Source: Blastocystis sp. Blastoise (Eukaryota; Protista; Bigyra: Opalinata). From it: DNA of 64,000 nucleotides. Location: contig JBBPEB010000015.1 of assembly GCA_039096225.1 (NCBI GenBank), forward strand, positions 2,046,001 through 2,110,000, written 5' to 3'. The stretch's first letter is position 1, and each line of letters opens with the position of its first letter. Position numbers and translations under genes: made by a program. Positions 31,805-33,874 of this stretch are shown in pieces. The notes beneath the pieces were generated by a model that did no database searches, was not told the origin of the DNA, and was given only the letters and a program-made list of their open reading frames with translations.

Positions 31805-31962
31805 GTTCCTACCATAGTATCCTTATTGACTTTATGATCACTGACGGGGTGTTGAGCAATATTATACATATCACCATACATAGCTCTATGACCACCATAA
31901 TTATGAAGCATACACCAAATCCAGTATATATATTAAGGTATATATATAAATAAATAAATAAA

Positions 31963-31999
<37 letters not shown>

Positions 32000-33874
32000 A
32001 TATATATATAAATGAATATATATATTATAAATATTTATAAGGATATCTTTTTATGATTTTTAGCGAATTTTTCGAAGAGAGGACTTTGTTCCGAGTTGAG
32101 ATCCAATATGATTAAACTATATATATATATATATAGAAATGAATAAATAATATACCCTTCATCGGGAATACCAGATAAATAAGCAGCAAGACCTATATAT
32201 ATATATAATATATATATATATATATACGTTCATCATTCCAGAATCCACTATGGAATTGCCATCCCTATATATATATATATTCCCGTGATTATTTACATAC
32301 TTGCATAACCCAGATGCCTTCAGAATCAGCAGATTTAATACCATCATAAACAACTATAAATATATATAAAAATATAAATATATATAAATATATACCTTTA
32401 GCAACATCATGTAAATAGGTGAGATCCGTTGATTTAGGGTATATTATTAAGGATTTCTACGGTAATTACTACATTTATAATAATAATATATAATATATAA
32501 GGATATATCCATTTCATTAAATTGATCAGTATTATAGAAATGAGAAGTAAAACCTAATTCTTCAGTTTGGATTTCGATATATTTCTTGCCGATGGCGGTA
32601 AAGAGAGGGTCTTGAGGGTCTACCATGGTATTGGCGGTATATTTCTCTTGGAATCCATTCCAACCGGTAGCCTTACGAATAGTAGCATTAGGATATATAG
32701 TCTATATGAATAATCATAAGAAATAGATATAATAATCATATATAATAAATAATATTATAGAATATATTATAAGTATTCGCAAAACAATAGTAAAAAATCA
32801 TAATAAATAATAATATACAGCAATAGATTCAGGAACAAATCCAGCAAAAGCAGGTAATACTTGATACATACCAAACTCTTTTTGTCTTTGAACAATCTAT
32901 ATATATAGTATATAATATAATATAAGATATATATATAATATAATATAATATTAATATAATATAAATATATATACCTTAAGATTGATTTCCCATTCTTGAC
33001 GAATCCAGTTGGTAGTTAAAGGTCCACCCCAACGCTGTATATTACCCATACGTTGCCAGGCGTAGAGGAATCAAGGAAAAACACGGGAATAGAATAATAA
33101 CAATATAGTATAATAAAATAATAATTAAAAACTATATAATAATAATAACAATATAGTATAATAATAATAAAAATAATAATAATAAAACTAAAAAAAAAAA
33201 TAATGGATATAAAGAAAGCGGGTCCAGAGAAATAATCTAAAATATCCGATTGAGAAAAACCAAAAGCTAAGAAAACCTTTAACCAAATATATTCTTGACT
33301 ATATATAAATAAATAAAATATATTAAAAAAAAAATAATAATTAAAAAAAAGAAAAAGAAATAATAATTAAAAAATACCCAGTAAAAGTAAGAGGCATATT
33401 GACACCATTAAGAGCCATCCAATCGATTTCTTTTTCCCAACGATTCCAATCCCAGAAAGAGGAAGAATAACTGACAGTACAAACATTCATATAATAACGA
33501 TATTGAACAGCGAAAATATGATGCCAAGTTTCGGTAATTTCAGGTAAGACAGCAGGTAAACGGATATTATTACCAGTACCATTTTCACCCCAACTTATCG
33601 AAGAGTTGCAATAGTATTTCAAGTAATTATTAAGAGCAACACTCATAGCAACAGCATCAGAACCTTTTAACACGATCTTTTCACCATTCTTTCCGGATTT
33701 CGTAAGTTCGAAAACGTCAAGATCATTCTCTTTAGGAATTTCTTCAAAAACGAAAGACTCTACATATTCTTCACCGAGAAGACGACCAACAAGTCCTTGG
33801 ACAGTTTCAACACTATTACTAGCATATGCAGTAGCTAGAATTAAAGCAAAACACAAAAACAATACGTTTTTCAT
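29897..33874 (-). CDS. NAGLU: Alpha-N-acetylglucosaminidase (GH89), secreted/lysosomal, about 20 exons including three AT-AC introns
   Basis: Signal peptide; [80 protein letters not shown]. Confidence 0.95.
31924..32046 (-). other. U12-type AT-AC intron 3 of NAGLU (123 nt, phase 0)
   Basis: 5' ATATCCTTAT; 3' ACCTTAATATATATAC; removal restores NHKK|[11 protein letters not shown]. Confidence 0.93.
32439..32506 (-). other. U12-type AT-AC intron 2 of NAGLU (68 nt, phase 0)
   Basis: 5' ATATCCTTAT; 3' ATCCTTAATAATATAC; removal restores catalytic-region FNEMD|PKS. Confidence 0.95.
33062..33210 (-). other. U12-type AT-AC intron 1 of NAGLU (149 nt, phase 0)
   Basis: 5' ATATCCATTA; 3' TTTTTCCTTGATTCCTCTAC; removal restores GPAFF|AWQRMGN. 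Confidence 0.93.

Follow-up and report, generated by a model that had tools for sequence, protein, structure and literature searches.

Three predicted U12-type AT-AC introns in a NAGLU gene of Blastocystis sp. Blastoise and their probable origin before its duplication into four paralogues

How did a single glycosidase gene of Blastocystis sp. Blastoise come to carry three AT-AC introns, all in phase 0, and do they serve a purpose there? We addressed this question in a window of 64,000 nucleotides (C4:2,046,001-2,110,000; assembly 33.34 Mb, 34 contigs; 22% GC). The initial annotation had placed three AT-AC segments in a gene that it took for a Blastocystis NAGLU, had described them as U12-type introns, and had claimed that their removal restores GH89 motifs, in phase 0 each time. 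Reading the window letters bore out the positions of the segments, which lie on the minus strand, and exact mapping of the deposited protein WA158_001441 did the same for the restored motifs and the phase. The U12, NAGLU and genus assignments were also right; in the deposited protein, the Pfam domains NAGLU_N, NAGLU (TIM barrel) and NAGLU_C score 77, 439 and 192 bits, all above cut-off.

Table 1. Positions of the NAGLU gene, its AT-AC introns and two variant introns in paralogues.
Feature	Coordinates	Strand	Basis or use
GH89 alpha-N-acetylglucosaminidase (NAGLU) gene WA158_001441 (P0163), 848 aa	29897..33874	-	exact protein-to-DNA mapping
Exon 1: hydrophobic leader, NAGLU_N domain, TIM barrel start	33378..33874	-	served as homologue search query
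Predicted U12-type AT-AC intron A, phase 0, GPAFF/AWQRMG, before residue 196	33062..33210	-	donor, branch, protein mapping
Predicted U12-type AT-AC intron B, phase 0, FNEMD/PKST, before residue 316	32439..32506	-	donor, branch, protein mapping
Predicted U12-type AT-AC intron C, phase 0, NHKK/WIWCMLHN, before residue 396	31924..32046	-	donor, branch, protein mapping
U2-type GT-AG intron exactly at site A, without branch motif	L022:3465-3587		
Site C intron, AT...AT ends, donor ATATCTTT, branch TCTTAAT	L021:4549-4640		

Nineteen introns of WA158_001441 mapped on the window residue for residue, 16 of them GT-AG and three AT-AC; the latter, introns A, B and C, are numbers 2, 5 and 10 and together span 1287 nt. 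Intron A (149 nt) begins with ATATCCAT and ends in the branch motif CCTTGAT, 6 nt and AC, while B (68 nt) and C (123 nt) share the donor ATATCCTT and the branch motif CCTTAAT, followed by 5 and 6 nt, respectively, and AC. With a GC content of 5-16%, all three carry an extended donor of the RTATCCTT type and a CCTTRAY branch site near the 3' end with no polypyrimidine tract, and both versions of the branch site are complementary to the stretch GUAAGGA of a U12 snRNA candidate from the same genome. The 8-9 nt that had been given as the distance from CCTTRAT to the terminal AC is in fact measured from the branch A to where the intron ends; the spacer between CCTTRAT and AC is 5-6 nt long.

The junction peptides PAFF/AWQR, NEMD/PKST and NHKK/WIWC align with 14 homologues without gaps. 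In-frame stops occur in both B and C, and neither has a GT/GC-AG alternative within 30 nt that would keep the frame; the sole alternative for intron A, a GC-AG option, would remove 12 conserved residues. Of 2000 dinucleotide-shuffled versions of the gene region, 1963 lacked the motif arrangement seen three times in the gene, 37 had it once, and none had it twice or more. The deposited protein is built on all three AT-AC junctions, and the annotation pipeline behind the deposited models gave preference to RNA-seq-supported introns (PMC12129017), which together provide indirect transcript support; two RNA-type sequencing runs contain 0.39-0.47 of the words from the stretch. Judging from these sequence features, segments A, B and C are almost certainly real U12-type introns.

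Other introns of the gene showed peculiarities of their own. At 30921-30842 (minus strand), a GT intron consists of a TA run without a final AG, probably owing to a base dropped in assembly, and the deposited model uses a longer intron there (30956-30801), cutting residues that the paralogues have. At 30473-30359 (minus strand), a GT-AG intron (30471-30375) with a TAT-repeat interior lies between 15-nt direct repeats; since the paralogue on C19 is also interrupted at roughly this position, this intron need not be newborn.

The genome holds four NAGLU genes that are 58-77% identical across the TIM barrel: the window gene and paralogues C4b (L021), C8 (L022) and C19 (L023). An AT-AC intron occupies site B in all four and site C in three (window, C8 and C19), with AT...AT ends at site C in C4b. 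Site A has an AT-AC intron in the window gene and C4b and a GT-AG intron in C8, and is without an intron in C19. The C8 intron is likely a conversion from U12 AT-AC to U2 GT-AG in which both ends were altered. In C4b all three U12 donors read ATATCT. The model deposited for C4b (WA158_000935) gets each of the three sites wrong, and near residues 360-372 a small exon is missing in a long TA run.

Support for the paralogue tree, (C4b,(C8,(window,C19))), is moderate (88/82, 90/91). AT-AC introns at site A in the deepest and one terminal branch imply by parsimony that the U12 state is ancestral there. The simplest history would thus place all three U12 introns in the ancestral gene, with one conversion and one precise loss at site A later on; the conversion would have been one-way. 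All three sites predate the duplication into four paralogues, so the introns appear to be old and not recent insertions.

Some snRNA genes of the minor spliceosome that would remove them are present in the genome. The search for its snRNAs suggested earlier was partly successful: U11 (62.9 bits) and U6atac (63.8 bits) were found above the Rfam cut-off, and a full-length U12 candidate with an intact branch-pairing GUAAGGA scored 46.8 bits against a cut-off of 53 (E 6e-7). No U4atac was found in the genome by profile search, and complementarity to U6atac gave no convincing genomic match. Weak U4atac-like complementarity was noticed at C3:858884-858959 of the assembly (G000), where the spacer is too short and which may be the end of a coding region. 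All four snRNAs (U11, U12, U4atac and U6atac) have been reported in subtypes ST1 and ST7. Going by established U12 biochemistry, base pairing would join U11 to the ATATCC(T/A)T donor and U12 to the CCTTRAT branch site a few nucleotides before the terminal AC, and U6atac would catalyse excision by the minor spliceosome. In the sole U6atac found (L003:1501-1617, minus strand, equal to C21:544821-544937), the 5' splice-site box reads AGCCGAGA vs AAGGAGA in the Rfam consensus. This box is one pairing with donor positions +4 to +8, in which pairing at +6 and +7 would go; the alteration, of which we found no mention in the literature searched, may be the reason why ATATCT donors are tolerated.

Where the introns came from depends on how far back the sites can be followed. 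The outgroup NAGLU genes were those of Acanthamoeba (tail unmapped), Balamuthia, Aphanomyces, Oscarella, Salpingoeca, Sycon and Nematostella. The 78 introns mapped in these seven eukaryotic genes include no AT-AC intron, and all lie outside sites A, B and C. The closest are U2 introns 5 nt from A (Acanthamoeba, Nematostella), 3 nt from B and 8 nt from C (both Oscarella). Only one of the 19 positions of the window gene is common to any outgroup, and the positions common among outgroups are all missing from Blastocystis NAGLU. Together with the nearest-clade protein, which is encoded without introns on an environmental contig (63% GC), this is consistent with a wholesale turnover of introns in the line leading to Blastocystis, in which U12 introns were gained beside U2 introns.

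The gene itself groups with eukaryotic lysosomal-type NAGLUs (protist, sponge, choanoflagellate), and the Blastocystis NAGLU clade (100/100) falls within a eukaryote clade (100/100). Lateral transfer from bacteria was rejected, the sampled bacteria lying on one side of a 100/100 branch and Blastocystis among the eukaryotes. The top-scoring match, P0164, is a tandem Bacteroidales gene, and a second, partial NAGLU gene lies in tandem in Acanthamoeba (L039:4599-4952). A metagenome scan for a plant genomic NAGLU copy returned transcripts and bacteria only, and no paper on U12 introns in At5g13690 was found in the literature search. Subtype 1 has three GH89 genes on record, AV274_3771, AV274_0131 and AV274_0605.

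We consider an old gain of the U12 introns on the Blastocystis line, before the four-paralogue duplication, the probable origin, on a reading of intron positions and gene trees. U12 introns would have been created alongside most ordinary introns in a vertically inherited eukaryotic NAGLU, which would have gained A, B and C before duplicating into four; afterwards B and C would have persisted while A became a U2 GT-AG intron in one paralogue and was precisely lost in another. The initial annotation had favoured lineage-specific gain over ancient retention. This agrees with the lack of any shared position in the seven eukaryotes, but the gain is placed before the split of the four paralogues. 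That all three introns are AT-AC in phase 0, which had been taken as a sign of gain, is ordinary for the genus (p=0.12 at 49% phase 0).

The main alternative, which we regard as unlikely, is that the three U12 positions date from early eukaryotes and that the sampled outgroups have since lost or converted them. NAGLU is old and vertically inherited, de novo creation of U12 introns is thought to be very rare and a few ST1 minor introns are common to Lingula (PMC10639083), and cross-supergroup conservation is just ~9%, as only 9% of human U12 positions are common to Arabidopsis (PMC7367187). Because such sharing is low even for old introns (PMC7367187), absence from seven genomes is weak evidence; and as the tree does not join Blastocystis with the oomycete, the outgroups may partly be paralogues. 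However, no intron of either type occurs at the three sites in the seven genomes, intron-rich Oscarella included, old U12 sets avoid phase 0 (~22%; p=0.01 for three of three), and nearly all U2 introns of the NAGLU gene are likewise lineage-specific.

Less likely still is that GT-AG introns gained in Blastocystis, with donor GTATAT, mutated to ATATCC, so that the cluster would reflect conversion and not insertion. U2 donors here do begin with GTATAT, which differs from ATATCC by three changes, a U2 intron occupies precisely site A in C8, and such switching would account for the U2-like phase distribution reported in ST1. Against it, the tree makes the U12 state ancestral at A, requiring one conversion and one loss vs two switches and one loss; both ends and the branch site would have to change together; and conversion is held to be one-way, from U12 to U2 (PMC7367187). 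A switch to U12 may have taken place before the NAGLU duplications.

Whether three such introns in one gene call for a special explanation depends on their number in the genome, which we estimated from pattern counts and from random tiles totalling 140 kb. With a spacer of 56-86 nt, a strict pattern gave 86 matches genome-wide vs 30 for a same-composition decoy, and with a spacer of 87-117 nt 54 matches; a looser pattern with a 25-55 nt spacer gave 224, many of them background. The same-composition decoy replaced a reversed-pattern control, which was inflated because its TCCTATA, read on the opposite strand, matches common U2 3' ends; decoy 3' ends in the local scan were uninformative. The local scan of the random tiles, which recovered 6/9 known AT-AC introns, yielded two AT-AC candidates, one convincing (L026:8036-7922, minus strand) and one doubtful (L033:4763-4945). 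A radical-SAM-like gene in the window also has an AT-AC intron of 73 nt (46464-46392, minus strand), with a second ATATCCTT donor from 47965. The counts point to several hundred U12 introns, an order as in ST1 and not on the scale of Physarum. For U12 fractions of 0.5-1.5%, three in 20 introns has a per-gene binomial probability between 1e-4 and 3e-3; across ~8500 genes, chance alone would give 0.1-1.5 genes of this kind.

It had been proposed that the minor spliceosome limits the rate of expression of this gene. Nothing supports this claim, and evidence against slow U12 excision mattering has been cited (PMC7367187). The host-glycan role given to the enzyme is likewise unsupported, the protein grouping with lysosomal-type NAGLUs of eukaryotes. 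From the sequence features at hand, a selected cluster in which three U12 introns would tie NAGLU output to minor-spliceosome activity is very improbable: three of ~20 introns exceeds the binomial expectation and B and C are retained in four old paralogues, but A was lost or converted in two of the four copies, clustering turns up in every genome examined and the slowness of excision is contested (PMC7367187), and chance alone would supply such genes at the number given above. With several hundred U12 introns in the genome, the cluster is an upper-tail case, probably a neutral one and not a regulatory device. Finally, chance motifs or assembly errors in AT-rich, truly GT-AG introns are scarcely credible despite apparent consensus errors in TA-repeat introns of the assembly (30921-30842), an artefact being effectively refuted by ten U12-type introns at homologous sites across the four paralogues, by shuffles that never yield two, and by the extended donor and branch motifs.

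An old gain on the Blastocystis line has to be seen against what is known of other lineages. In ST1, 346 U12 introns were described in 319 genes (PMC5608401) and later 253 minor introns, 77% AT-AC and 49% in phase 0, an excess for which recent gain was already offered as one explanation (PMC10639083). The Blastoise introns resemble these in their AT-AC ends, richness in phase 0, number of a few hundred per genome and occurrence of more than one in some genes (PMC5608401; PMC10639083). They differ in length (68-149 nt in NAGLU vs ~40 nt in ST1) and in coming from a tortoise-derived strain in which their history is traceable in four paralogues; the genome paper of that strain does not mention minor introns (PMC12129017). 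Physarum polycephalum likewise has lineage-specific U12 positions common to paralogues and tolerates ATATCT donors and non-canonical ends; in contrast, its U12 introns number in the thousands and have perfect donors and an altered branch motif, most are GT-AG, phase 0 is under-represented among them, and their ends are transposon-like (bioRxiv 10.1101/2020.10.12.336362), whereas those of Blastoise are AT-AC with a canonical branch motif. By inspection, the ends of the NAGLU U12 introns have no inverted repeats of the kind that a Physarum-type transposon origin would leave, and cross-matches among these introns were AT-rich low complexity only.

Animal and plant genes with several U12 introns share the non-random clustering in one gene, but in those sets phase 0 is under-represented and most introns are GT-AG (PMC7367187). 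Compared with eukaryotic lysosomal-type NAGLUs, the Blastoise enzyme has the same three Pfam domains, leader peptide and conserved FNEM motif, but four paralogues and an intron set of its own; it has a Cys-rich insert in the C-terminal domain that is also present in Oscarella and Acanthamoeba. Human AOX1/XDH have three U12 introns, on which no paper was found in the literature search. For subtype 1, richness in AT-AC ends and phase 0 has already been published, as has a possible recent gain, and U12 clustering is general; the NAGLU gene adds a well-resolved instance of a Blastocystis trait that is in the literature, and on its own it extends a known oddity.

Ongoing creation of minor introns is debated, and Blastocystis has been called an unexplained case for which within-clade comparisons are wanted (PMC10639083). 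The NAGLU family, with three sites to compare among four paralogues and with ST1 orthologues also on record, is a compact test set for these. Deposited models break at U12 introns, as in WA158_000935, so minor introns of this strain are under-annotated. Tentatively, Blastocystis may be a second lineage after Physarum with large-scale de novo creation of U12 introns, here AT-AC, in phase 0 and transposon-free, and the altered U6atac box may have eased their birth. If this is true, about one in six new introns in some genes would be minor, and the NAGLU paralogues would record, within a single family, gain, AT-AC U12-to-U2 conversion, an AT-AT variant and precise loss.
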